Positions 27,283 to 56,231 of a stretch of 64,000 nucleotides of DNA are shown one piece after another (positions within the stretch are counted from its first letter, which is position 1; every line of letters begins with the position of its first letter). The DNA comes from Histomonas meleagridis 2922-C6/04-290x. Its lineage: Eukaryota > Protista > Parabasalia. The notes under the pieces were generated by a model. That model was given only the letters and a program-made list of their open reading frames with translations. It was not told where the DNA came from and ran no database searches. The position numbers were made by a program, and so were the translations under genes. The stretch lies in the NCBI GenBank assembly GCA_020184695.1, contig JAANOX010000071.1, positions 118,313-182,312 on the forward strand, given 5' to 3'.

Positions 27283-29988
27283 TTATGCAGTTGGACATTT
27301 AGATGTTTTAGTTTTTTTGTCCTTTATTAATTTAACAATATTAGTATAATGATTTTTGGATGCAATTTGAAGTGCTGTTTTAAATGATTTGAATTATTTC
27401 CAAATATTATTTCGAAATTAAAAATTATTGAAATAAATTTTAAATAAAACAAATAAGTATCTTTTGCATTAATATCAATTTCTTCTTTTTCAAGAAGTAA
27501 TTTAACGATTTCTGTATTATTATTTTTTGCTGCTTTCATAAGTCCTGTTTCAAATAATTTTAATCATTTCCAAATATTATTTTGAAATATAAAATGAGAA
27601 AAAAAATAAATTTCATTTAAAACATATAAAAACCTCTAGCATTAACATCAATTCCTTCGTGTTCAAGAAGTAATTTAACCAATTCAGTTCTATTCCCAGT
27701 AATCGCTATCGAAAGTGCTGCATTAAATAATTTAAATAATTTCCAAATTTTATTTTGAAATTCGATATTATTCTATGAGAAATTTGACCATTTCTATTTT
27801 ATTCTTTTCAACTGCCAACATAAGAGCTGTTTGAAATAATTTAAATAATTTAAAAAAATTAGTTTAAAACCATATATTATTAAAATAAACCTTATTTTGA
27901 GATATTAAATAATTAAAATAAAAATTTTCTTTAGAATTAATATCAATTCCTTCATGTTCAAGAAGTAATTTAGCTATTTCTATATGAACATTTTTAGCTG
28001 CATACATAAGTGCTGTTTTGAAAAATATAAATAATTTCCAAATATTATTTTTGAAATATAAAATAATAAAAATAAATTTTTAATAAAACAAATCAATGTC
28101 TTTAGCATTAACATCAATTCCGTCTTTTTCAAGAAGTAATTTAACTATTTCTGTATAACCATTTTTTGTAACAATTATAAGTGCTGTTTTGAATTATATA
28201 AATAATTTCCAAATATTATTTTGAAATATAAAATAATAAAAATAAATATTAAATAAAATAAATTAATAATTTTAGCATTAATTTCAATTCCTTTTTGTTC
28301 AAGAAGTAATTTAACTACTTCTGCATGGCCATAAAAAGATGCATGTATAAGTGCTGTCCAAAATTTTCAAAATAATTTTCAAGTATTATTTTAATACTTC
28401 AAATTATTAAAATAAATATCAAATAAAACAAATAAATACCTTTAGCATTAACATCAATTCCTTCTTTTTCAAGAAGTAATTTAACTGTTTCCGCATGGCC
28501 ATAAAAAGATGCATGCATAAGTGCTGTACAAAATAATTTAAATAATTTCCAAATATTATTTTGAAATATGAAATTATTAAAACAAATATTACGTAAAGTA
28601 ATAAACAAACATCTTTGGCATTAACATCAATGCCGTTATATTCAAGAAGTAATTGAACTATTTCTGCATAACCCTCTTTAGATGCAATAATAAGCGCTGT
28701 TAGAAATATTTTAAATCAATCCCAAAAATTATATTAAAATTTCTAATTATTATGATAAAGATTAAGCATAACAAAAATACATTTAAAGCATTAATATCAT
28801 TTCCTTTTTGCTCAAGAAGTAATTTAACAATTTCTGTATGATAATTTTTAACTGCTTCTATAAGTGGTGTACAAAATATTTTTTTAAAACATCAAATTAT
28901 TTTTATAATTATTTTATAAAACAAACAAATCTTTTTCAAATTAGGGTTAATTTCTTCTTGTTCATTAAAAAAGTTCAGTAGTTTCATATTAATTGATTCA
29001 ATATTTGAAAACAATAAAAAATTTATAAGTTTTTTCCTTGAAAAATCAGCAATTTTATTTTCATATAAATAATAAAAAATATCATTTCGATGAACTCAAT
29101 TGCTGCTTCATATGCGCCTTCAAATGATGCTTTATTTTGTTCGCATATATGAATTATTTCTAGATTTCCACCTGCAACAGCAAATTTTGCTGTTTGCTTT
29201 AAGAGAAAACCATTTAACAGCAGATATTTAAAACATTTAATCGAGCCAAAAAATGCTGCATAATCAATTAATGAAACATTTGGTTTGTTAATAAATGAAC
29301 ATTTTTCATAAAGTGATGGGACAATTATTTGATTAAAAATAAACTTCGTTTGTGATGTTATTTCTCGAAGCTTTTCGACATTATCATTTCGAATTATTAT
29401 CGCAATTTCATTTGGATTAATTCCTTCTTCAACTAATTGCTTATGAAGTTCCCAATCATTTTTAGAAAGATTTTCGTAATTACTCATGAAATATGTAGAA
29501 AATAAAATTTTCCAATCTCTCTCTAAAATCTTTTTTAAATTCTCCATTTTTTTATCTGAAATATAATTAGCGAAATAAAATGTTATTTTATCATCAATAA
29601 AATTTGCTGGAATTAAATTTATTTTAATCATTCTATCAAGAAGAAAATAGGATTCTTGTGTATCTAAATGTTGAAGGAATTTGGTAAACGTGTTGAGCAT
29701 TTCATAATCAGTTTTATTGTTTTCTTTCTCTTTGGTTTCTATTTGCTTCAGAAAATTAATATAAATGTTATAATCATTCATTTTTGATTGAAATGCTGAA
29801 TATATAATTCGACTTAAAGCTAATTTAGGAAATGGATATGCATCATCATTAAGTAGATTTATTATCGGATCTACTGATTCATAAATATTTTCTTCAGTTA
29901 AATTAAAAACAATTTCTTCAAGTGACTCTAGTTGCTGTATCCATTTTCTTGATGATGATTCATTTGTTTTATTGGGATTGTTTTCCAT
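27283..29988 (-). pseudogene. DUF3447-type ankyrin gene with 10 insert-interrupted repeats; frameshift near 29094 and one truncated repeat (or assembly error)
   Basis: N-terminal IIRNDNVEKL...SLIDYAAFFGSIKCFKYLLLN; a one-base shift restores HRNDIF...EQEEINPNLKK; 90-nt TAL...DINAKD modules continue to a terminal module ending KTKTSKCPTA* at 27283. Confidence 0.75.
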
Positions 29989-34271: not shown

Positions 34272-36338
34272 ATGTTTATTTCCTGCTTTTTCCTTACATT
34301 TTCCAAAGAATTACAGCTATACGCATATTCTAATGACACATTTGCAAATGGGAAAGGCGGTGCTTATCTCAATTGGGAAGATAATGAAAAAGATGTTCAT
34401 TATAAAATATTTTTGAAAACGAAAGACAATCAGTGGGAACCACTCAGCACGCACAAGATTGGGACAGCCATAAAAGTTTTAAATATTTATCCATCAGAAA
34501 ATAAACTTGGTGCGAATGTGCAGTTAGATGAAGCAGTTAAAATTAATAATGTTACAATGAAATTTAATAAAGATCAAATGCAACACATATATCCAAAATC
34601 AGCTTCATTAAAAGTATGGATGGAAGGTGGATTCATGGATCAATTAACTCGGACCCCTTGGGTATTGATACCGAGTTGAAAGAGCAAATTATTGATGTAA
34701 CATTAAACTCAATTGATGAATTTGAAACGTCAGAAGAAAATTTTATTTATCAATTTGATGTTGTTGTTTTCGGATTTTGGGATTATAGCGGAGGTTTTTC
34801 TCTATCAACAGAAAAATCAAAAGGCATTGTAGAAAAATATATCAAAAATGGATATGGCTTTCTTGCTGGTCACGATTCAATCATTTTAGAATTCCTTGAT
34901 GATGATAATGATGATAAGCCAATCGGCTTAACCGCCATCAGAGATTTGTTTGGAATTGGTATCCACCAAAAAGAAGGAAGTTATGAAGGTGCGAAGTCTT
35001 CTGAAGTTGAAGTTCACAAACAAGGTCTCATCTTAAACTACCCGTGGGATCTTAATACAAGCCCAGAAGCAACAAATTTACTGGTCTCATACAGCGAAGC
35101 AAAATGCCGCTGGAGATATTTGGTATTCGTTTTCCGATAGTACCACTCAAATATCTGAAACAGAGAATTTTTATCTTACGACGTATGGAAACACAGCAAT
35201 GATCCAAACAGGACACAGCGAATGTAACGCAACAGAATTTGAAAGGAAAGTCCTTGCTAACACTATATTTTATCTTAAGCAAAGGACCAGTGAACACGAG
35301 TATGAAGAACATCACTATTCGATTGACAAAGCAAATCCAGAAATTATCAATATAACAATAGATCCAATTAATTATTTAGCAATAATTGAAGCATATGATG
35401 TTGGAACGTTATACACATTTAAAGTTGCATCATATAATAGTGAAGGCAAAGAAATTGATAATTCAGAAGCTGATGTTAATGTTACTACGGGAATCAAATG
35501 TTATAAATATCTAATTAACGAAAATTCTAAATGTGATGTAGAAACTATGGTAAACATAGCATATAATAATACTATTAAATTTACTACAGAAGATATTGTT
35601 TATCAAAGATATCTTCATGTTGCTCCTGTTGACAAAGCAGATAACATAGGAAAAGCCATTAGCATTCGACTTAATTTCTCTACGAATACATTTTCACAAT
35701 CGAATACATTTTCTCAATCAAATACATATACGCAATCAAATACATATACGCAGTCGAACACGTATTCACATTCAAATACGTTTTCCAGATCAAACACTTA
35801 TTCACAATCAAATACATTTTCGGATTCGAATACATTTTCTCAATCAAACTCGTTCACGGAGTCCAATTCATTCACTTCATCATTTCAATTTGGTGCTTCG
35901 CTCAGTTTTTCATACATTCTCACTATCTATTCATCCGACATAAGTTCACTTACACAAATCTTCCGCTCTCAGCATTTGTCAGGTTCGACCTTCATATTTT
36001 ATGAGTATTCGGTCATTCGCATGACGACGATCATTAGCTTTTATTCAGGCTATTACACAATTGTATTTCCGTCTTTGTATTACACGAATGATGTACCTGT
36101 TTTGGATAACAAAGGAGTGCTCATCGGTATAATATGTGGATCAATAGCAATTGTTTTGATTATTGTTGGAGTTATAATTTGGTTGTTTAGAATAGGTAAA
36201 AAAGATAATTCATACTCGGGAATGAACGAAAGACTGAGTGACTCATTTGGCTCCGATATACATAAGCAACAAGAACAACATGAAATGTTAAAAACCATTG
36301 GAGAAATGGCAAAGGAAGACGATGATCAATGGATGTAA
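34272..36338 (+). pseudogene. Type I membrane protein with a bacterial-like extracellular module (recalled as DUF5057-like), split by two frameshifts
   Basis: Three consecutive ORFs join into one protein: signal peptide, IKVLNIYP, SASLKVWMEGG, FDVVVFGFWD, AGHD, NTAMIQTGHS...ERKVLANTIFYLKQ, S/T stalk, TM helix GIICGSIAIVLIIVGVIIWLF. Confidence 0.75.
35682..35877 (+). repeat. 18-nt coding repeat (SNT[F/Y]S[Q]) forming an S/T-rich stalk, about 11 copies
   Basis: FSQSNTFSQSNTYTQSNTYTQSNTYSHSNT... Confidence 0.85.
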
Positions 36339-37298
36339 TCTATAGATTATAAAATAAAGTACATTTAGTGTTTATTCTTAATTTTGTTATTTGTTGTGTG
36401 CTAAGTATTAAATTTGAGTGATTGTTAATTTGTAAAATGGATTTGTAAAATTTTTAAAAGCTGGATAGGAATATGTTAAAAATTTATTTAAATTTACAAA
36501 TAAAATTTTTATAACGAACAGGAAGCAAGCATCCAGTAAAGTAAACGAAATATATATAAATTCTATTTTTCTAGATAAATATAAGAATATTTTTTAGTCA
36601 TAAAAAACATATCGTACTTTATTTCTTTCATCTTATGGTTTTTCATAGGTTGTAGAACCCAAAATTGATTCGAATTTTTTAATGATATGACAATTGGTTC
36701 ATATTTAGAATTTATATAAGTTTTCGATTTATTAGCTTATCGGCCCAGAACAATTAATATTAATGCTAGATATTCTTATCAGTTTTATTCAAAATCAATT
36801 TCTAGAAACAATATCTAAATTTGAGTTGAATCTCTCTTATTCATTTGAAATTCTGATTTATTTTTTTATTAATAAAAAAACGACTTTTTTAATTTTATTC
36901 GAGGTCATATACACAAGATTTGAATGAGTTATCAAATTTTAATACTTTACAAAAAAAATTTATCAAGAAAAAAATAGCGAGCTTGAGAAGGGTAAACACA
37001 ATACTTCCAGAAAAGGAGAAAAATTGAAGAGGAATTTAATTTCTTTGAACTACTGCTTTAGTGTTAGTTAAGGATATTAAGTCTTCTTCGATATGCGATA
37101 ATGTTCTTTTTTTAATAAAATTTATTTTTTGACTTTATAAAAAAAAAATAAAGAAAATTTGGTTACCAAAAGAACTTTTTTGTGTCATTTTCAGTTTCAA
37201 CATGTTAAGGGATTTGAAGATAATTTTCTGAGTTTTACGAAGCATATTTCACATGAACTCAAATTTTCTCTACTAACCGTTTATTAGGATTTTTAACA

Positions 37299-40200
37299 TT
37301 GGGAGGAAATATTTCACACGAGAAAGTTCAAACCAAAGGAATTGATAAAACGGAAGTTACTATAGAAGTATTACAGCAAATCGAAAAGCTTATTTTTGAA
37401 GTGAATGAAAATAATATTTCAAAAACAGTTGAATCAATATTAGTATTCGAAAATAATCAGTTTCCTTTTTCATTTAAACTTTTGATATGTCAAATGATAT
37501 ATGTATATTATATATCAGGAAATTATAATATTAACATAATTTGTGAATTTTTAAGACAATTTCAAATCAAAAAAGAAGAAAATAAAGAAACAAAAAATAA
37601 AATTATAAATATTTTTGAATATTTTCTAATTTGTACTGAAACACAAGAATCTTATTATATTCTTTATAAATTACTTGAAAATAAGTTAATTAAAGAAAAA
37701 ATGTCTGTAATTAAAAACTCATTATATTTTCTTCAATGCATTCCAAAAGAAGAAATATGTCAAACAAAATCCAATTTTCAAAATGAAATTATAAATAATT
37801 ATGAAAAACTTTCACAAAATGATTTTAAGCTTCATAAACAATTCATTGAAGAAGGACATAATCCAAATGAAATTGCAAAAATAATTCGAAATGATGAAAT
37901 TGAAAAACTTCAAGAAATAACATCGCAAAGTGATTTTAACATTAATCAAAAAATCGAACCATCACTTTATGAAAGATGTTCTTTTATTAATGAAGAAGTT
38001 TCATTGATTTATTATGCAGCATTTTTTTCATCAGTTAAATGTTTTAAATATTTACTTATAAATGGTGCTAAAACAAAATATATAGGCAAATATGCAATTG
38101 CAGGTGGAAATGAAGAAATCATTCATTTATGTGAACAAAATCATTCATCATTTAGAGGCTCATATGAAATATCAATAAAATTTCCTTCATTGGAAACAGG
38201 AAATATATTCATTCTACAATATTTCCTGAAAATAAATTCATTTCCATTAAATATTTACGATATTTCATCCATTTATAATAATAAAGAACTTTTTAATTAC
38301 TTAATTACTGAAAATATTTTTGATATTAATCAGAAAACTATATATTTCTTTCATTCAATGTTTATGTAAATGATTTATATAAAAATATTATTTGAAAATT
38401 CTTTAAATTTTTTGGAACAGCATTAATGTTTGCAATAGAAAATGGTAAAAATGAATTAGTTAAATTACTACTTAAACAAAAAGGGATTGATATTAATACA
38501 AAAAATATTTAATTTTTAAACTTAATGCTTGTTTTAATAATTTGGAAATTCAAAATAATATTTGGAAATTATTATAATTATTTAAAACAGCACTTATTAG
38601 AGCATCTGAAAATGGTTATACAGAAATCGTTAAATTACTTCTTGAACAAAAAGGAATTGATATTAATGCTAAAAGTATTTATTTGTTTTATATGTTATTT
38701 ATTTTAATAATTTAATATTTTAAAATAATATTTGGAAATTATATAAATTATTTTGGACAGCACTTATGTTTGCATCTGGAAAAGGTTATATAGAAATAGT
38801 TAAATCACTTCTTGAACAAAAAGGAATTGATATTAATGCTAAAGACATTTATTTGTTTTATTTAAAATTTATTTTAATAATTTTTTATTTCAAAATAATA
38901 TTTGGAAATTATTTAATTTTTTTACGGCACTTGTGAAAGCATCTGAAAAAGGTCATACAGAAATAGTTAAATTACTTCTTGAACAAAAAGGAATTGATAT
39001 TAATGCTAAAAGTATTTATTTGTTTTATATGTTATTTATTTTAATAATTTAATATTTTAAAAGAATATGTGAAAATTATATAAATTATTTTGGACAGCAC
39101 TTATGTTTGCATCTGGAAATGGTTATATAGAAATAGTTAAATTACTTCTTGAACAAAAAGGAATTGATATTAATGCTAAAGACATTTATTTGTTTTAATT
39201 AAAATTTATTTTTATAATTTGGAAATTCAAAATAACATTTGGAAATTATTTAATTTTTTTACGGCACTTGTGAAAGCATCTGAAAGAGGTCATACAGAAA
39301 TAGTTAAATTACTTCTTGAACAAAAAGGAATTGATATTAATGCTAAAGACATTTATTTGTTTTATTTAAAATTTATTTTAATAATTTTTTATTTCAAAAT
39401 AATATTTGGAAATTATTTAATTTTTTTACGGCACTTGTGAAAGCATCTGAAAAAGGTCATACAGAAATAGTTAAATTACTTCTTGAACAAAAAGGAATTG
39501 ATATTAATACTAAAGACATTTATATGTTTTATTTGTTTTAATTTTGATCATTATAATATTTTAAAAGAATATGTGAAAATTATATAAATTATTTAAAACA
39601 GCACTTATTAGAGCATCTGAAAATGGTTATACAGAAATCGTTAAATTACTTCTTGAACAAAAAGGAATTGATATTAATACTAAAAGTATTTATTTGTTTT
39701 ATTTGAAATTTATTTTAATAATTTCTTATTTCAAAATAATATTTGGAAATTATATAAATTATTTTGGACAGCACTTATGTTTGCATCTGGAAAAGGTTAT
39801 ATAGAAATAGTTAAATCACTTCTTGAACAAAAAGGAATTGATATTAATGCTAAAAGTATTTATTTGTTTTATTTAAAATTTATTTTAATAATTTTTTATT
39901 TCAAAATAATATTTGGAAATTATTTAATTTTTTTACGGCACTTATTTTAGCATCCTCAAGTGGTCATACAGAAATCGTTAAATTACTTCTTGAACAAGAA
40001 GGAATTGATATTAATGCTAAAGACATTTATATGTTTTATTGGTTTTAATTTTGATCATTATAATATTTTAAAAGAATATGTGAAAATTATATAAATTATT
40101 TGAAACAGCACTTATGTTTGCATCTGGAAAAGGTCATATAGAAATAGTTAAATTACTTCTTGAACAAAAAGGAATTGATATTAATACTGTTAATACTTAT

Positions 40201-41382
40201 TCTTTTCCTTTCATATTTATTTGAATAATTTTGGATTTCAAAGTTTGATTCAATAAATGCTCAAAATATTTGAAACAGCATTAACACTCGCATCTTGTAA
40301 TGGCCACACAGATGTAATCGTAATGCTTCTCAAACAAAAAGGAATTGCTGTTAATACCAAAAATATTTCTTTATTTTATATAACATTAATTTTAATTATT
40401 TTATATTTCAAAATAATATTTGGAAATTATTTAAATTATTTAGAACAGCACTTATGTTTGCATCTGGAAAAGGTCATATAGAAATAGTTAAATTACTTCT
40501 TGAACAAGAAGGAATCGATATTAATATGAAAAATGTCTAATTAAAATGTAAAATATTTCAAATATAGTTTTGATATAACATAAAATAATATGGAAATTAA
40601 ATTAAATTATTAAAACATCACTAATATGTGCAACAGAAGAAGGATATATTGAAATAGTAAAAAATCTTCTAGAACAAAAAGGAATTGATATTAATTCACA
40701 AGATATTATATTAAATAATAACGAATCTCAAAAAATATTTTAATGATATTATTAAATGTTACATATTTAAATTAATTAAATAAATCATCACTTATATTGG
40801 CATCAGAAAAAGGTTATTTCGAAATAGTTCAGATACTACTTGAACAAAAAAGGATTAATATTAATATAAAAGATGTTTCAATGGATTAATTAATATTTCA
40901 ATTAACAATTTTGTGATTTAAAAGAAAATTTGGAAAGTATTTTCAATATATTTTACTCCACTTATTTGGGCATCTATTAATGGACATTTCAAAATAGTAC
41001 AAATATTACTTAAACAAAAAAGCATTGATATTAATGCCAAAAATTTATGCTTTTTCTTATATAATATTTATATGAATCTTTTTATATTTCCAAATTATTT
41101 TTGGAGTTTCTTTAAATATTTGAAAACAGCTCTTATAAAAGCAATTGAAAATGAACATGTTAAAGTCATTAAATTACTATTAAAAAATGATAATATTGAT
41201 ATAAATATTAATGATGTTAAAATGATTTAAATGATTTTCATATTAAATATTTAAAATTTTAAGATAATTTTTGGAATTTATTAAAATTAAAAGAAACGGC
41301 TCTTATGCATGCAACAAAAAAAGGAAACACAGAAATTGTCAAATTACTAGCAAAATATAAACGAAAAACAAGTAAAAAATAA
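37299..41382 (+). CDS. DUF3447-type ankyrin protein with 18 insert-interrupted ankyrin modules; start codon uncertain
   Basis: DUF3447-like region (IIRNDEIEKLQE...YYAAFFSSVKCFKYLL), then 17 stop-free 90-nt modules and a terminal module ending KRKTSKK* at 41380-41382. No in-frame ATG near 37299. Confidence 0.65.
38340..41295 (+). repeat. Tandem array with 167-171 nt period (90-nt ankyrin module + 77/80/81-nt AT-rich insert)
   Basis: Modules start at 38417, 38587, 38757, 38924, 39094, 39261, 39428, 39598, 39768, 39935, 40105, 40275, 40445, 40615, 40785, 40955, 41126 and 41296. Confidence 0.95.
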
Positions 41383-42067
41383 TATATTTTATATATATGA
41401 AAATGTCTTTATATAAAAATTTTGTATTTAAATAGATCCTACTTTAATTCAAAATGTTTAACAACACATTGCAAAGATACATGTTTTTTCAATTGAAATT
41501 GACGTAAATTTACATATAAATCCCAAAATATAAGATAACAATATTTTTGATCTATTAGAAAATCATTTAACAATTAAAAATTCAACGAATGGGAATCAAC
41601 ATAATGGATAGAGCTTTTGCTCGTGGAATTTCGAACATAAATTAGGTACCTACATTATAACTACATCAAGATTAACTAACATGGTTGGACGAAAAATTAC
41701 TTCAAGACATCATACAAAATTAGGTACCAAGTAAAATTCTTTTCAATCTTTTCTTTATATTGTTTGTGAATATTATATATCAAGGAATTGATTCGTTATT
41801 CCTTATATCCTAAAATAATCATTATTTTGCTTTTAAAAAGTGCTATATCTTTGATAAATTTAAAGGAAAGTGACAAAATTCAAATGAAGTGGAGAAATTT
41901 TAAAAAATCATTATATCTTAATCTAAATTTGTTTAAATCTATTTATATGCTATTAATTGAAATACACTTGGAACAATATAAATAATTTCGAATTTTCAAA
42001 AAAATCTATAAGAAAGAAAATTGGTTGGCACCTTTTTGTAATGAGTTGAAATGACTCATTTTTCCAC

Positions 42068-43300
42068 ATGAAACGAAAGAAACATTGCAACTGGGAAACA
42101 CTTTTATCAATAAATCAAGCAATTTTTGGTTTGAGCGAAGAAAATTTCTCTAGATCTTTAGGTTTAATAATCAACAAATTTAATGAAATCCATCCATTAT
42201 CTTATGATTTAATGATTATATTATTCCTTTGTAATTAAAAATAATAATGTGGATTTATTTTTGAATATTATAAAAGAAATAAGAACATTTGAAGAAAGTC
42301 ATAAAATCAAATCCAATATATTTGATATATTTGGGCGATTTCTTATCAAACATACATATGAATCAGAATCATCTTATCTTCTTGAAGTTATGATTGAGCA
42401 TAATTTTCATGAACCAAACATTGTAAAAAACAGCAAGAGTGCTTATTTTGTACATTATATGTCTAAAGATAAATTAACAATCCATTTAAGGGATGATAAA
42501 TTTGTTAGAGCCTTATCAAATTATGAAGAACTTTCAAAGAATGATTGGGAATTACATTTGCAATTAATTAGAGAAGGACATAATCCAAATGAAATTGCAA
42601 AAATAATTCGAAATGATGAAATAGAAAAACTTCAAGAAATATCATCACAAAATGATTTTAATTTTAATCAAACAATTGAATCATCACTTCATGAAAGATG
42701 CTCTTTTATTAATACTTATGATATTGGATTAATTACTTATTCAGCATTCTTTGGATCTATTAAATGTTTCAAATATTTACTTATGAATGGTGCAAATGTA
42801 GAAAACACAGGTAAATATGCAGTTGCATGTGGTAATGAAGAAATTATTCATTTATGTGAACAAAATCATGCATCATTTGAATGTGCATATGAAACAGCAA
42901 TCAAATATCATCGAAATGATATATTTAAATATTTTTATGATAATAAATTAAAAGAAATCAATAATTTGGAAGAATTAGGTGTTAAATGTATTTTATATCA
43001 TAATTATGAAATATTTTCATTTTTACTTAAAGAAGGAATGAAAATCAATGATGATATTATTAATGAAGCAGCAATTATTGGAAATATTTTTTTAGTTGAA
43101 TATTTTCTTAAAGATCATTCAATTCCGCATGATATTTTGGTGTTTTCAGCTGAATCAGTAAATATTGAACTTGTTGAATACGTTTTAAAACAAAAAGGAA
43201 TTGATATTAATGCTTCAAATATTTGTTTGTTTTATTTGAAATTTATTATAATAATTTCTTATTTCAAAATAATATTTGGAAATTTTTATATGATAATGAA
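42068..43300 (+). pseudogene. DUF3447-type ankyrin paralog; frameshift near 42228; loses family similarity inside its first insert
   Basis: ATG at 42068 opens family-like QAIFGLSEENF; the main ORF 42249-43484 has the DUF3447-like core and ends GIDINASN followed by insert sequence. Confidence 0.7.
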
Positions 43301-43788
43301 TTTGAATTCTGAATTTTTTATTGATATAATTTCATCAAATCAAAACAAGAAAACTTATATTGCTGATGATAATTTTAATATTGGCTGTAATTTATGTTTT
43401 TTTCTAAATGAATTAATAATCTTTCATATGAATTACCAAAGGAATGTATTCGACATTATGAAAACGTTACCAAATTTATTGTAATGCATTATTTTTGGGA
43501 TTAATCCAAAATTTATCTTTATACATTTAACTGTTTTCCTGTTCAAATTTCTTAAAAAAGAGACTCTATCAAATGAACCAAGAGTACCCAACATAATGCG
43601 CCCTATGAATATTTCAAAAAAGAAATCTTTGTGTTTGCATTCTCATCAATTTTTTTTTTTGTTTCCTAGAATTATCATATAATTAATGAACTAAATATAG
43701 AACTAACGAAAGTTTTGGACACACAAAAAAATCAATTATTAAAATTTGTTATTAAAATAAAGTCAATTTCAAATTTTAAAAATTAAAA

Positions 43789-45021
43789 TTAACTCGATCT
43801 ACCTGAAAAATCTTTTGATTTTGATCGAAACATAAAATATATGACCCCAGCGATTACAACAGCTAGAATAGCTGTCAATATGCTAACAACAATTATTATG
43901 GTTTTTTTGTTACTTTTCTTTTCCTCACCATTCATTAGGGAAGGATAGTCATCTGGGTCATATAATTCTATTTCTTCTGGGTCATCTGGGTCATCTGGTT
44001 CATCTGGTATTTCTCCCGAATAAAATTCAAATATATCATCTTGCTTTACCATACCCAAAATATTTTCTGGAACACTACTCACGTCAAAAAATTTTTCTGA
44101 TCTTTTGGTTGTTGCTATGTTCACTCTAAGTTGGGAATCATCCCATTTCGAATCATCAGGTTTAATTTGAAGAGATGGAAGTGGAATTTCTGCTAGGTAA
44201 TTTGGCATAACTACTTTCATATCTGAAGGCTTCAAAAATCCCCAAAAAAAACTATCATAAAAATCCTGTATAAATATATCAATTGATGAATCGACTTTAC
44301 AATTCTTTTTTAAAATCATTGGAATACTTATTGTTTCATATTTATATGGATTTACAACTATACCAATCTTATCTTTATATTTGATCATACAATGATCAGA
44401 CCCAAGACCAAACTTTACTTGTATATACTCTGCATGAATACTTATTTCATTTATTTGATCAAAATATATTTGCTTTTGAAGTGCTACAATATTTCTAAAT
44501 GTTGTTTGAGAAGTAATAACTCGATTAGCTTTCGCACTTCCTTCTTTGATCTCATGAATAAAAAGAGTATCTGCTGCAAAATTTTCAATAAAATGAACAA
44601 AACCTCTAAGGACAACAACTGGAATTGTATTTGATACATCTATTCCTTTTATATATAAATCAGTAAGTGTAGGGCTGGTAATACATATTTTTTTGCATGT
44701 AACTTTAGATAAATCGAATGGAAAATGGGTATTGGGTGAAGAAACCAATATAAGTGCTGTTTCAGCACCAGAAAGATGTTTATCCATATATTTTATTTCA
44801 CTTAATTTATAATAAGAAACAATATTATCAAATCCTTCAATTGCTGAATCGGTTTTTATGCATTTTCGTTCATTTTCTTTATCATTACATTTGGCAGCAT
44901 ATATCAACTTTATTTTTTCTAGATTTGGAAATTGAATATTGTGTTTTGGGTCTTTGTAAACTATTATCCTATGTTTTGATTCTTCGTTGCAAATGATTCC
45001 TGGTATTAAAAGAAGAAACAT
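43789..45021 (-). CDS. Type I single-pass membrane protein with acidic PDD stalk
   Basis: N-terminal hydrophobic signal, PDEPDDPDDPEE repeat, TM helix IIIVVSILTAILAVVIAGVIYFMF. Confidence 0.8.
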   Translation of the reverse strand: MFLLLIPGIICNEESKHRIIVYKDPKHNIQFPNLEKIKLIYAAKCNDKENERKCIKTDSAIEGFDNIVSYYKLSEIKYMDKHLSGAETALILVSSPNTHFPFDLSKVTCKKICITSPTLTDLYIKGIDVSNTIPVVVLRGFVHFIENFAADTLFIHEIKEGSAKANRVITSQTTFRNIVALQKQIYFDQINEISIHAEYIQVKFGLGSDHCMIKYKDKIGIVVNPYKYETISIPMILKKNCKVDSSIDIFIQDFYDSFFWGFLKPSDMKVVMPNYLAEIPLPSLQIKPDDSKWDDSQLRVNIATTKRSEKFFDVSSVPENILGMVKQDDIFEFYSGEIPDEPDDPDDPEEIELYDPDDYPSLMNGEEKKSNKKTIIIVVSILTAILAVVIAGVIYFMFRSKSKDFSGRSS

Positions 45022-53814: not shown

Positions 53815-55674
53815 ATGGTTTTACTGGAAGATGTGCTTCTTCCAAGCGCGATAGTTCATGCAAAAGAAATCATAATTGTTCAAGATCTTATGATGTCTAT
53901 TTCTGAAGACAAAGTTCAAGAAGCAAAAAATACAATATTAAATCTTTCTTTAATTCATACTTCTGATGGGATATTATCACTTTCAAATAATGCCTATTTT
54001 GCTGTACTATACCGTCCAAATTTAATACATCCACTTTCAAAATTAATTATTAGTTTATGTAATAGTTCAAATGATGAAAACAAGTTATCAGAACTAAAAG
54101 AAAAGTTCCTTGATCTACCACAAAAAATTCTAGAACAAAAATGGAAAATAGCTCTTCTCCATTCGCTTTATTATCATGGATTATATTCCGATGATGAACT
54201 TTTTGAAGTCTTAAATAACTTTTTAGAAAAGCATCCAATTATTTCCAACTTACCTTTTTGGAAGAATGGATGTCGACAACAATATTTAATCTTTATTTGG
54301 TTTGCACCACTTCTTTTTAAGAAATCACCGAAAGTTTTTGATAACATTTTTAATCACTTAAAAGAAAGTGTTTCTAAAAGAGATTTAACTGATAACTATA
54401 ATAACTATTTAGAACTATTTCCAAAGCTTATGGAAAATGATTGGGAAATTTATAAAGAATGGTCACATGATTTATATTTGAAAGATTCACTTGCATATAT
54501 TATAAAGAATGATGATGTTGAAGAACTCAAAAAAATTCCAAGCTTGAGTCCAAATGATCGAATTCTTCCGACTGTATTTGAGTTTTCTTTATTTTTAAGT
54601 CGGAAACCAAATCTGTTCCATTTTTCGGCATTTTATGGATCGGAGAAATGTTTTAATTATTTGGTTACATTAGGCGGCGATATGAAAGCACAAGATTATG
54701 GAAAACGAAACTTAATACATTTTGCTTTATTCGGTGGAAACATGAACATAATTCAAAGGTCAGTTAAAGAAATATCGAATTATGATCTTGTTACTCGACT
54801 TGCTGCCGAATTCCATCGTTTTGATTTATTTAAATTGTTTTGTGAGACGAATAAAACTGACATTAAATCAAACGACTTAGAGAACGGCTCAATTTTTCAT
54901 GGAATTGCTGCTTCGAATCATATCAAAATGATTTTGTATTGTATCGAACAAAATTGTGACGTTAATTTAAGAGATGGTTTTTGTATTAATGTTTTGATGT
55001 TTTTTATATGTTTTCGGCGTTTAGTTTTACGTTTTTGGGCTCCACTTAATTGTGCTATTGATTATTGTGCTCTTGATGCTATTCATGTTTTACTTGCTCA
55101 TAAAGATATTGATGTTAATATGCAAGATGAATATGAATGATTTTATTCTTTTGGAGTTTTTTGATGATTTTTATTTCGCCGTTGATTAGAGCGACTATTA
55201 ATGGAAATGCTGATGTCGTAGAGATACTTTTAAAGCATCCAAAAATTGAGATCAATGCTTATGGAGTTTCTTCCAAATTTCATTTAGTTTATTCATAATA
55301 ATTTATAATATTAATTCATTTCATTTCAAACTGCGCTTCATCGTGCTGTTCAATCAAATGCAATCGATGTTATTAAAGTTTTGTTATCAGTGAAAGAAAT
55401 TGACGTGAATTTGGTCGACGTTATTTTTATGATTTTTCATGTTCATTTGTTTTGTTTCAAGTTTCTTGCGTTTTTTGAATGTTTTAATATCAATTTTCGG
55501 ACTCCTTTACATTTCGCTGTGCAAAATCGTTCTAAAGAAGCTGTTAATTTGCTTTTATCAAATCCAAATATCGATAAATCTGTCGTTGATATTAATTTAA
55601 TAATTTTGATGTTTATATATTTTTTATGGTGTTCATTTTATGTTTTTCTTCTTCAATCAATTCTTAATGAATAA
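53815..55674 (+). CDS. Divergent DUF3447-type ankyrin protein with insert-interrupted C-terminal repeats
   Basis: IIKNDDVEELK...FSAFYGSEKCFNYL; intact modules APLNCA, SPLIRA, TALHRA and TPLHFA continue past the ORF stop, separated by AT-rich inserts. Confidence 0.75.
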
Positions 55675-56231
55675 ACAAATTAACACAAAAAAAATTTTCC
55701 TATATTTTAATTGGTTCTTAAAATATATTCGACTGTGCAAATAATTATAATTATGTTTGAAACATTTTAAAATTAATTTATTTATTAAATGTTTAAACAA
55801 ATAGTTATTTAGAATTTTCTTAATAAATTTTGCAACATGATTCATGTTAGTTTTTTTAGTGCACTGGTTTCCATAAAAAAATAACCATTATTGAAGGTTG
55901 TGATTAAAAAAAGTTTAATTACACAATTTGCGAAAATATTCTATTTGATGATATATGTCTCCATTAAATTTATTACAATATTGTAATAACTGTTATGAAA
56001 GATAATTTGATTGTTTCTTTATACTGAGTAAAGGCACATAATAGAGAAAACAAACCAATGTTTATATAATATATTTGGAAATTGTATACATATGAATTAT
56101 TTTTTTAAAATTTAAAAAATAAATTTAAGAATGAAAAAATTGCTATTACACATGAGAAGAGTTCAAAATTTATAGGTTTCTTTTGGAAATTTCTATTTTT
56201 AATGAAACAGAATAAAAATTTAACAGAAATT

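Follow-up and report, generated by a model that had tools for sequence, protein, structure and literature searches.

Single codons alternate with 17-nt AT-rich spacers in an ankyrin-repeat gene of Histomonas meleagridis

In an ankyrin-repeat gene of the poultry parasite Histomonas meleagridis, we found that each residue of the loops linking successive repeats is written as a lone in-frame codon, and that these codons are flanked by 17-nt AT-rich spacers (rarely 18 nt) that appear to be missing from the RNA. We found this intron-like layout described in no paper. The gene (hereafter gene 1; 37299-41382, + strand) lies in a 64,000-nt stretch of contig JAANOX010000071.1 (assembly GCA_020184695.1, positions 118,313 to 182,312 of the forward strand), referred to here as the window, whose first letter is position 1. 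A preliminary description made from the sequence alone had reported ankyrin modules of fixed length separated by inserts of fixed length, and our analysis confirmed that observation. We recovered 17 stop-free modules of exactly 90 nt (30 codons, T/S..D/N/S) between 38417 and 41215, which start at 38417, 38587, 38757, 38924, 39094, 39261, 39428, 39598, 39768, 39935, 40105, 40275, 40445, 40615, 40785, 40955 and 41126. A terminal module of 28 codons with a basic tail (41296-41379) is followed by a TAA stop codon (41380-41382). The modules are separated by 18 gaps of 80 nt (12), 77 nt (5, including the first) and 81 nt (1), which are 80-95% A+T. Nine of the 18 contain no AG dinucleotide. The diverged gaps at 40195, 40535, 40705, 40875 and 41216 are each 80 nt, as had been stated. 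A single module is recognized as an ankyrin repeat by Pfam (PF00023/PF12796; 24.4 bits for PF00023 against a cut-off of 21.1), and all 18 modules keep T-A-L, A, G, the hydrophobic VxLL motif and the D/N positions. The array is preceded by an N-terminal exon (37299-38339) of the DUF3447-type parabasalid ankyrin N-domain kind, which is open from a TTG. Nine homologues (P0001-P0009) are 37-50% identical to this domain and start with MG at this position (i.e., they have ATG where gene 1 has TTG), so this particular copy may not be translated.

The gaps are not single blocks. Each consists of four spacers alternating with single codons, and the hairpin is read from the triplets at gap positions 18-20, 38-40, 58-60 and 78-80. 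Gap 1 (38340-38416, 77 nt) reads spacer, AAT, two adjacent spacers, GAA, spacer, GGA, giving the hairpin T-NEG-TAL. The 80-nt gaps carry four codons each: N, G, G, K in gap 2 (38507-38586); V, N, G, W in gap 3 (38677-38756); V, N, E, W in gap 5 (39014-39093); V, N, E, K in gap 8 (39518-39597); E, L, G, W in gap 9 (39688-39767); V, N, E, E in gap 11 (40025-40104); H, W, N, E in gap 12 (40195-40274); N, Y, G, R in gap 13 (40365-40444); N, D, G, K in gap 14 (40535-40614), whose first spacer starts with GT; R, N, H, K in gap 15 (40705-40784); N, C, G, F in gap 16 (40875-40954); and D, K, G, E in gap 18 (41216-41295). The other 77-nt gaps carry three codons: K, F, G in gap 4 (38847-38923), where the fourth spacer abuts the T codon (the x3 codon is absent); K, G, G in gap 6 (39184-39260); K, F, G in gap 7 (39351-39427); and K, F, G in gap 10 (39858-39934). 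In the 81-nt gap 17 (41045-41125), the first spacer is 18 nt and is followed by codons N, Y, G, K. Gene 1 thus holds 72 spacers and 67 single codons, which when joined give normal ankyrin hairpins such as N-NDGK-TSL, N-NYGR-TAL and D-NCGF-TPL.

Every gap in four genes of the window could be parsed as 17/18-nt spacers plus codons. Of 139 spacers, 134 are 17 nt and 5 are 18 nt, and gap lengths of 77, 80 and 83 nt differ by whole codons. The spacers are about 90% A+T. Their consensus start is A or G followed by TTT (R-T-T-T), and they mostly end in TT. Among 105 distinct spacers, 46 start with AT (44%) and 23 with GT (22%), AA accounts for 14%, and none end in AG.

We next sought to determine whether the isolated triplets behave as codons. 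None of 143 predicted hairpin triplets tallied is a stop, and GC content is 0.31 at triplet positions against 0.07 in spacers. All four Gly codons occur at the Gly position (GGA 25, GGT 3, GGG 2 and GGC 1). A hairpin-centred ankyrin HMM built from 618 contiguous repeats of unrelated proteins ranked this register first of 20 for the whole gene (516.5 bits, against 479.3 for the next register and 239.1 with no hairpin), so the D-x-x-G-x-T hairpin expected between ankyrin repeats is present only if the single codons are joined. The same register ranked first in 14 of 22 distinct gaps, while an HMM anchored at the repeat ends could not separate the registers. Shifting the spacer boundaries by one base either turns Gly into Arg or loses the R-T start. 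Among young units, which were clearly amplified in tandem, the triplets differ three times more than spacers or modules (0.455 against 0.148 and 0.168 differences per site), suggesting a link to diversification of the ankyrin binding loops. The units in 40100-41450 are unique. The dN/dS among modules, a measure that had been proposed beforehand as a test of constraint, is only moderately below 1 (about 0.57).

The same layout occurs in three other ankyrin genes of the window, in another Histomonas locus and in gut-metagenome contigs from relatives, with unrelated spacer sequence but the same length. It was found in gene 54300-55680 and the minus-strand array 27283-28930 of the window, in the second Histomonas locus (L017) and in metagenome contigs L002, L003 and L006. 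Twenty diverged gaps from four sources aligned over 92 columns without a single indel, which is far from what neutral A+T-rich DNA would give.

To ask whether the spacers are present in RNA, we compared the share of sampled 31-mers held by sequencing runs with the share expected with and without spacers. Four RNA runs hold 0.28-0.33 of the 31-mers of the array and 0.37-0.45 of those of 37200-43800. Modules and exons alone predict 0.312 and 0.484, whereas unprocessed RNA predicts 1.0 and 0.79. The inside/outside ratio is 0.54-0.58 in three runs and 0.84 in one, where exon-only predicts 0.54 and unprocessed 1.48. DNA runs hold 0.68-0.75 of the array words, although one DNA run of lower quality also holds only 0.33. 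This evidence is indirect, because such shares show which fraction of words is held and not which words, and they do not display a joint in any read or cDNA. No processed product was found in the protein collections searched. A homology search with the ORF that reads through the 81-nt gap gave no hits, and a search with the N-terminal ORF found only genomic or metagenomic ORFs that stop at the first spacer. A search of protein representatives with one module returned only generic fungal and bacterial ankyrin giants, and a metagenome scan for a contiguous GIDIN-hairpin-TAL pattern found 10 unrelated ankyrin genes.

We therefore propose, with moderate confidence, that gene 1 encodes a protein of about 950 aa with an N-terminal domain and 18 ankyrin repeats, in which the helical part of each repeat is one 90-nt exon and the four beta-hairpin residues (x-x-G-x) are single-codon exons. 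In this view, the array is transcribed as a whole and every spacer is removed from the RNA, joining D|x|x|G|x|T in frame. The removed piece appears to be defined by its 5' R-T-T-T and its length (i.e., by an AG-independent, length-measuring process) rather than by a 3' AG. Our analysis establishes the DNA layout, its conservation and the coding behavior of the triplets; the absence of spacers from RNA assemblies has indirect support, while removal of the pieces one by one, and the enzyme responsible (a relaxed spliceosome or something else), are inferred. Three-nucleotide exons in series are unprecedented, and no known excision machinery is an obvious fit because the spacers lack GT-AG or AT-AC termini and have no conserved structure. 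More tentatively, Histomonas and its relatives may have an RNA excision system that is not conventional splicing, which recognizes a short 5' R-U-U-U signal, cuts out exactly 17 nt without any 3' AG and works on elements only 3 nt apart. Such a system would let hairpin-tip residues be stored as separate, rapidly varying single-codon cassettes, present in thousands of copies genome-wide.

The interpretation offered in the preliminary description was partly supported. Its inferences that coding modules and insert length are both constrained, that GT-AG splicing cannot remove the inserts and that about 68 nt per insert must disappear all hold, as does the idea of length-selected, non-GT-AG removal. 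However, the 68 nt are not one block but four separate 17-nt pieces, and the predicted junction D-I-(L/Y)-F-x-T is wrong: of the AAA TTA TTT NNN at the insert 3' ends, only the last triplet before T is kept. Of the three mechanisms suggested (non-canonical splicing, translational bypassing and programmed DNA excision), RNA-level non-canonical excision fits best, while the other two fit the 31-mer shares of the RNA and DNA runs poorly.

Among the alternatives, the least unlikely is that each whole 77-81-nt gap, or a ~68-nt core, is removed as a single non-canonical intron, such that the internal TTTGGA and the 20-nt periodicity are splicing signals and not codons. The 31-mer shares cannot tell one joint from four, and the motif TTTGG sits at a fixed distance from the T codon. 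However, this reading is opposed by the use of all four Gly codons at a fixed position, by the far lower profile score when modules are joined directly, by gap lengths that vary by whole codons or whole 20-nt units (47, 60, 63, 77, 80 and 83 nt) and by the concentration of variation in the triplets, and the D-I-Y-F-x-T junction has no ankyrin glycine. It is also unlikely that nothing is removed and the arrays are decaying or satellite-like ankyrin pseudogenes whose periodicity comes from internal duplication of a 20-nt unit. The TTG of gene 1, the truncation of gene 2, a truncated module in the minus-strand array and the tandem amplification of young units are consistent with decay. Against this, all modules stay open across units with about 35% nucleotide divergence, spacer length is invariant while spacer sequence is randomized between loci and between organisms, the triplets read as ankyrin hairpins, and the RNA runs hold nearly all module words by the indirect 31-mer measure, so the array is transcribed.

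Translational bypassing, in which ribosomes would hop 17 nt after each single codon of an mRNA that keeps the spacers, is very unlikely. In its favor, the gap length is fixed, and 30 of 105 distinct spacers give an in-frame stop if read through. However, there are no matched take-off and landing codons, since spacers end mostly in TTT whatever codon precedes them, there is no conserved structure, 72 successive hops in one protein would need near-perfect efficiency, and RNA assemblies hold no more words than the modules can supply. Programmed DNA excision is equally improbable: although the spacers are short, A+T-rich and precisely bounded, which recalls Paramecium internal eliminated sequences, DNA runs and two independent assemblies carry them, their boundaries are R-T-T-T...T-T and not TA/TA, and nuclear dimorphism or DNA elimination is not known in parabasalids.

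The closest described elements are ultra-short, length-constrained spliceosomal introns, such as those of Mikrocytos mackini (16-17 nt; PMC10245619), heterotrich ciliates (15-16 nt) and chlorarachniophyte nucleomorphs (18-21 nt; both as cited in PMC10245619), and the type B introns of Trichomonas vaginalis (23-25 nt; PMC12316389). Like the spacers, these are tiny and A/T(U)-rich, with an extremely narrow length distribution and a length constraint stronger than the sequence constraint, and they are removed from RNA, as is proposed for the spacers. The known ones have GT-AG ends and sit singly in many kinds of genes between ordinary exons, and those of T. vaginalis carry a branch-site motif (PMC12316389). 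In contrast, no spacer ends in AG, up to four lie 3 nt apart, and in this window they occur only in ankyrin hairpins. The T. vaginalis 3' motif ACTAACACACAG (PMC12316389) had no match in the window even with one mismatch allowed. With regard to a branch-point adenosine near the 3' end, A is enriched at spacer positions 11 (59%) and 14 (66%), and TAA occurs in the 3' part of 58 of 105 spacers, but this is a weak signal in DNA that is 90% A+T. Many spacers begin with AT, as U12-type AT-AC introns do, but they have no ATATCCTT donor, no TCCTTAAC branch site and no AC at the 3' end, and their consensus start is R-T-T-T and not ATATCC. Euglenid nonconventional introns also have non-GT-AG borders and are presumed to be removed from RNA, but they vary in length and rely on pairing of the intron ends, whereas spacer length is fixed and RNAalifold predicted 0 pairs in the 20 diverged gaps, so a covarying hairpin is not supported at family level. 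There were no Rfam matches, and neither a euglenid-type nor a BHB (tRNA-type) pairing of cut sites was found. Bypass elements such as those of T4 gene 60 and the Magnusiomyces mitochondrial byps likewise place short non-coding gaps, unmarked by splice signals, inside an ORF, but the RNA data here point, indirectly, to physical removal. Microexons of animals and plants can be a single codon long, but they are rare and lie between long canonical introns, whereas here 67 lie in one gene, each between 17-nt elements.

If the spacers are excised, gene 1 alone holds 72 of the shortest intron-like elements known outside ciliates and mikrocytids, and 67 single-codon exons in series; neither the AG-less ends nor this arrangement is described in the literature we could search. 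Excision would overturn the published statement that introns are scarce in H. meleagridis (PMC8529796). It would also show that the deposited annotation truncates ankyrin genes at the first spacer, as in P0010, a protein annotated as a 398-aa 'caskin' whose array continues downstream. The array would then offer a natural system for asking how a 3' cut site can be chosen by distance alone.

GT-AG, AT-AC and TA-TA boundary models applied by hand to several units either break the frame or lack the required dinucleotides. A scan for isolated 17-nt spacers joining long ORFs gave four hits, of which one lies inside an intact 2214-aa ORF, one was unconvincing on examination and two were judged to be chance from their position alone. 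Finally, the overlapping ORFs at 34272-36338 are plain frameshifts, not spacers.

The window lies on contig JAANOX010000071.1 of assembly GCA_020184695.1 and carries a PP2A gene whose product is identical to one found on that contig. This is one of the two Histomonas meleagridis assemblies of Palmieri et al. 2021 (PMC8529796), a paper that reports 43 Mb, 28% GC and scarce introns, and that does not mention ankyrin. The window has 27% GC and long uninterrupted ORFs of up to 3049 aa. The regular spacing of ankyrin modules and inserts noted in the preliminary description was confirmed. Following an N-terminal ORF (37299-38369, of which the exon ends at 38339), we found 17 modules of exactly 90 nt and a last module at 41296-41379, which has a basic tail and is followed by the TAA stop codon at 41380-41382. 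One module alone passes the Pfam ankyrin threshold. The 18 inserts measure 80 nt (12), 77 nt (5) and 81 nt (1), are 80-95% A+T, and nine of them contain no AG. Tandem Repeats Finder detects the young part of the array as a 170/337-nt repeat.

We next sought to determine what the inserts are, and tested whether they are built from 17-nt pieces lying between single codons. Every 80-nt insert splits as 17+3+17+3+17+3+17+3, while the 77-nt inserts lack one triplet and the 81-nt insert has one 18-nt piece. When joined, the triplets give ankyrin hairpins between the D/N/S that ends one module and the T that starts the next, for example NDGK, NYGR, NYGK, NCGF, ELGW, VNGW and DKGE. The gene carrying this array (gene 1) holds 72 spacers (71 of 17 nt and one of 18 nt) and 67 single codons, and the joined product would be about 950 aa.

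This layout is not peculiar to one array. Within the window, a second interrupted array of 9 modules on the minus strand (27283-28930) gives NEGL (with GGG), NYGK, KLGK and VNHGC, and in the last of these 83 nt is an 80-nt gap plus one extra codon. One module of this array (27830-27771) is cut after 20 codons and followed by a 26-nt A+T-rich piece, which also keeps the frame if removed, and the gap at 27926-27831 is an irregular 96 nt. The distantly related ankyrin gene at 54300-55680 (+ strand) has gaps of 63, 47, 64 and 81 nt, which parse as three, two, three and four spacers and give D-GDGW-APL, D-EYGI-SPL and so on. Most spacers of this gene begin with GT. After its last module come three more spacers with codons D and G, and then a short tail ending at a TAA near 55674, whereas its non-canonical N-terminal repeats have contiguous hairpins. 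Chains of three or more spacers at 20-nt steps, searched for on both strands, occur only in the ankyrin arrays of the window.

The same layout was found outside the window. A second Histomonas locus from the other strain's assembly (L017) gives KYGV, HFGN, KDGN and EYGN, and also has one hairpin with a single spacer. The deposited H. meleagridis protein at this locus (P0010, 398 aa, named a caskin-like protein; L017 6001-7197) ends at the first spacer, and at least six more ankyrin modules with 17-nt spacers follow it unannotated, downstream to about 8450. Gut-metagenome contigs assembled independently from short reads (L002, L003, L004, L005 and L006; ENA metagenome assemblies ERZ25039391, ERZ2861xxxx) carry homologues whose N-terminal domains are 37-50% identical and that have the same spacer layout, giving HDGS in L002, SSGY and YGGE in L003, and DLGN, SDGR and NDGC in L006. 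A Histomonas-like organism with this system is therefore present in those samples. By contrast, more distant parabasalid-type homologues (proteins P0013, P0016, P0017 and P0022) encode the hairpin contiguously. Twenty gaps from the interrupted loci align over 92 columns with no indel, although their spacer sequences are largely unrelated.

To test if the triplets behave as codons, we examined their composition, register and variation. Of 139 spacers, 134 are 17 nt and 5 are 18 nt, and none of the predicted triplets is a stop. GC is 0.31 at the triplet positions and 0.07 in the spacers. The Gly position uses all four Gly codons, which points to selection on the amino acid and not on an RNA motif. 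We then built an HMM centered on the hairpin from 618 contiguous repeats of unrelated ankyrin proteins. Among the 20 possible registers of a triplet in the 20-nt unit, the proposed register scores best for the whole gene (516.5 bits, compared with 479.3 for the next best and 239.1 for modules joined directly), and it ranks first in 14 of 22 distinct gaps, including those from the other loci. Among the young units the triplets differ at 0.455 per site, against 0.148 for spacers and 0.168 for modules, which is the pattern expected for variable hairpin-tip residues embedded in constrained or homogenized spacers. Among diverged modules dN/dS is about 0.57, which is weak but consistent with coding.

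The spacers themselves are 90% A+T. Position 1 is A (60%) or G (27%), positions 2-4 are mostly T, A is enriched at positions 11 and 14, and the last three positions are mostly T. None ends in AG or AC. We detected no conserved secondary structure and no Rfam family, and the T. vaginalis-type 3' motif is absent from the window.

Evidence from RNA is indirect and rests on shares of sampled 31-mers in sequencing runs presumed to be RNA, which do not locate the joints. For 37200-43800, these runs hold 0.37-0.45 of the sampled words, where, counting distinct 31-mers, an exon-only transcript (words that lie wholly inside exons) predicts 0.484 and an unprocessed transcript predicts 0.79. For the array at 38507-41295, the runs hold 0.28-0.33, against expectations of 0.312 for exon-only and 1.0 for unprocessed RNA, while two DNA runs hold 0.75 and 0.68 of the array words. 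The ratio of array share to outside share, which does not depend on overall coverage, is 0.54-0.58 in three runs and 0.84 in one, where exon-only predicts 0.54 and unprocessed predicts 1.48. These indirect data suggest that the array is transcribed and that the RNA assemblies carry essentially no spacer-containing words.

Together, our analysis demonstrates the DNA architecture, its conservation and the codon-like behavior of the triplets, and it supports the loss of the spacers from RNA only indirectly. That each spacer is cut out separately, defined by R-U-U-U at its start and by a length of 17 nt with no 3' AG, is an inference, and the activity responsible could be a relaxed spliceosome or something else. 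Parabasalid and diplomonad introns place the 3' site at a fixed distance from the branch point. Searches of the literature on parabasalid or Histomonas introns, ankyrin, 17-nt introns and single-codon exons found no description of this arrangement. The closest precedent is the class of ultra-short, length-fixed introns, namely those of Mikrocytos at 16-17 nt (PMC10245619) and of T. vaginalis at 23-25 nt (PMC12316389), which are reported as spliceosomal. The known introns of this class have GT-AG ends. They occur singly in many kinds of gene.

Some copies in this neighborhood may be decaying, even though the system as a whole is conserved. Gene 1 has TTG at 37299, where the homologues P0001 and P0002 have the ATG of an MG... 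(myristoylation-like) start, which could be a near-cognate start, a sequencing error or an inactivating change. Gene 2 (42249-43312, + strand), a DUF3447/ankyrin paralogue, lacks the conserved MG start (its ORF begins at a GTG) and has one hairpin with four spacers (43221-43297, codons E, L, G) followed by E-F-E-F and a stop, and is probably a truncated copy. The truncated module of the minus-strand array is a further sign of this kind. At 34272-36338 (+ strand), three ORFs that overlap or follow one another closely, in frames 0, 2 and 0, look like one gene with two frameshifts near 34650 and 35140. No A+T-rich spacer lies there, and the disruption could be an assembly indel or a pseudogene. 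Finally, the window carries a tandem array at 127-925 with a 29-nt period, 27.6 copies and 92% matches, the period of which is not a multiple of three.
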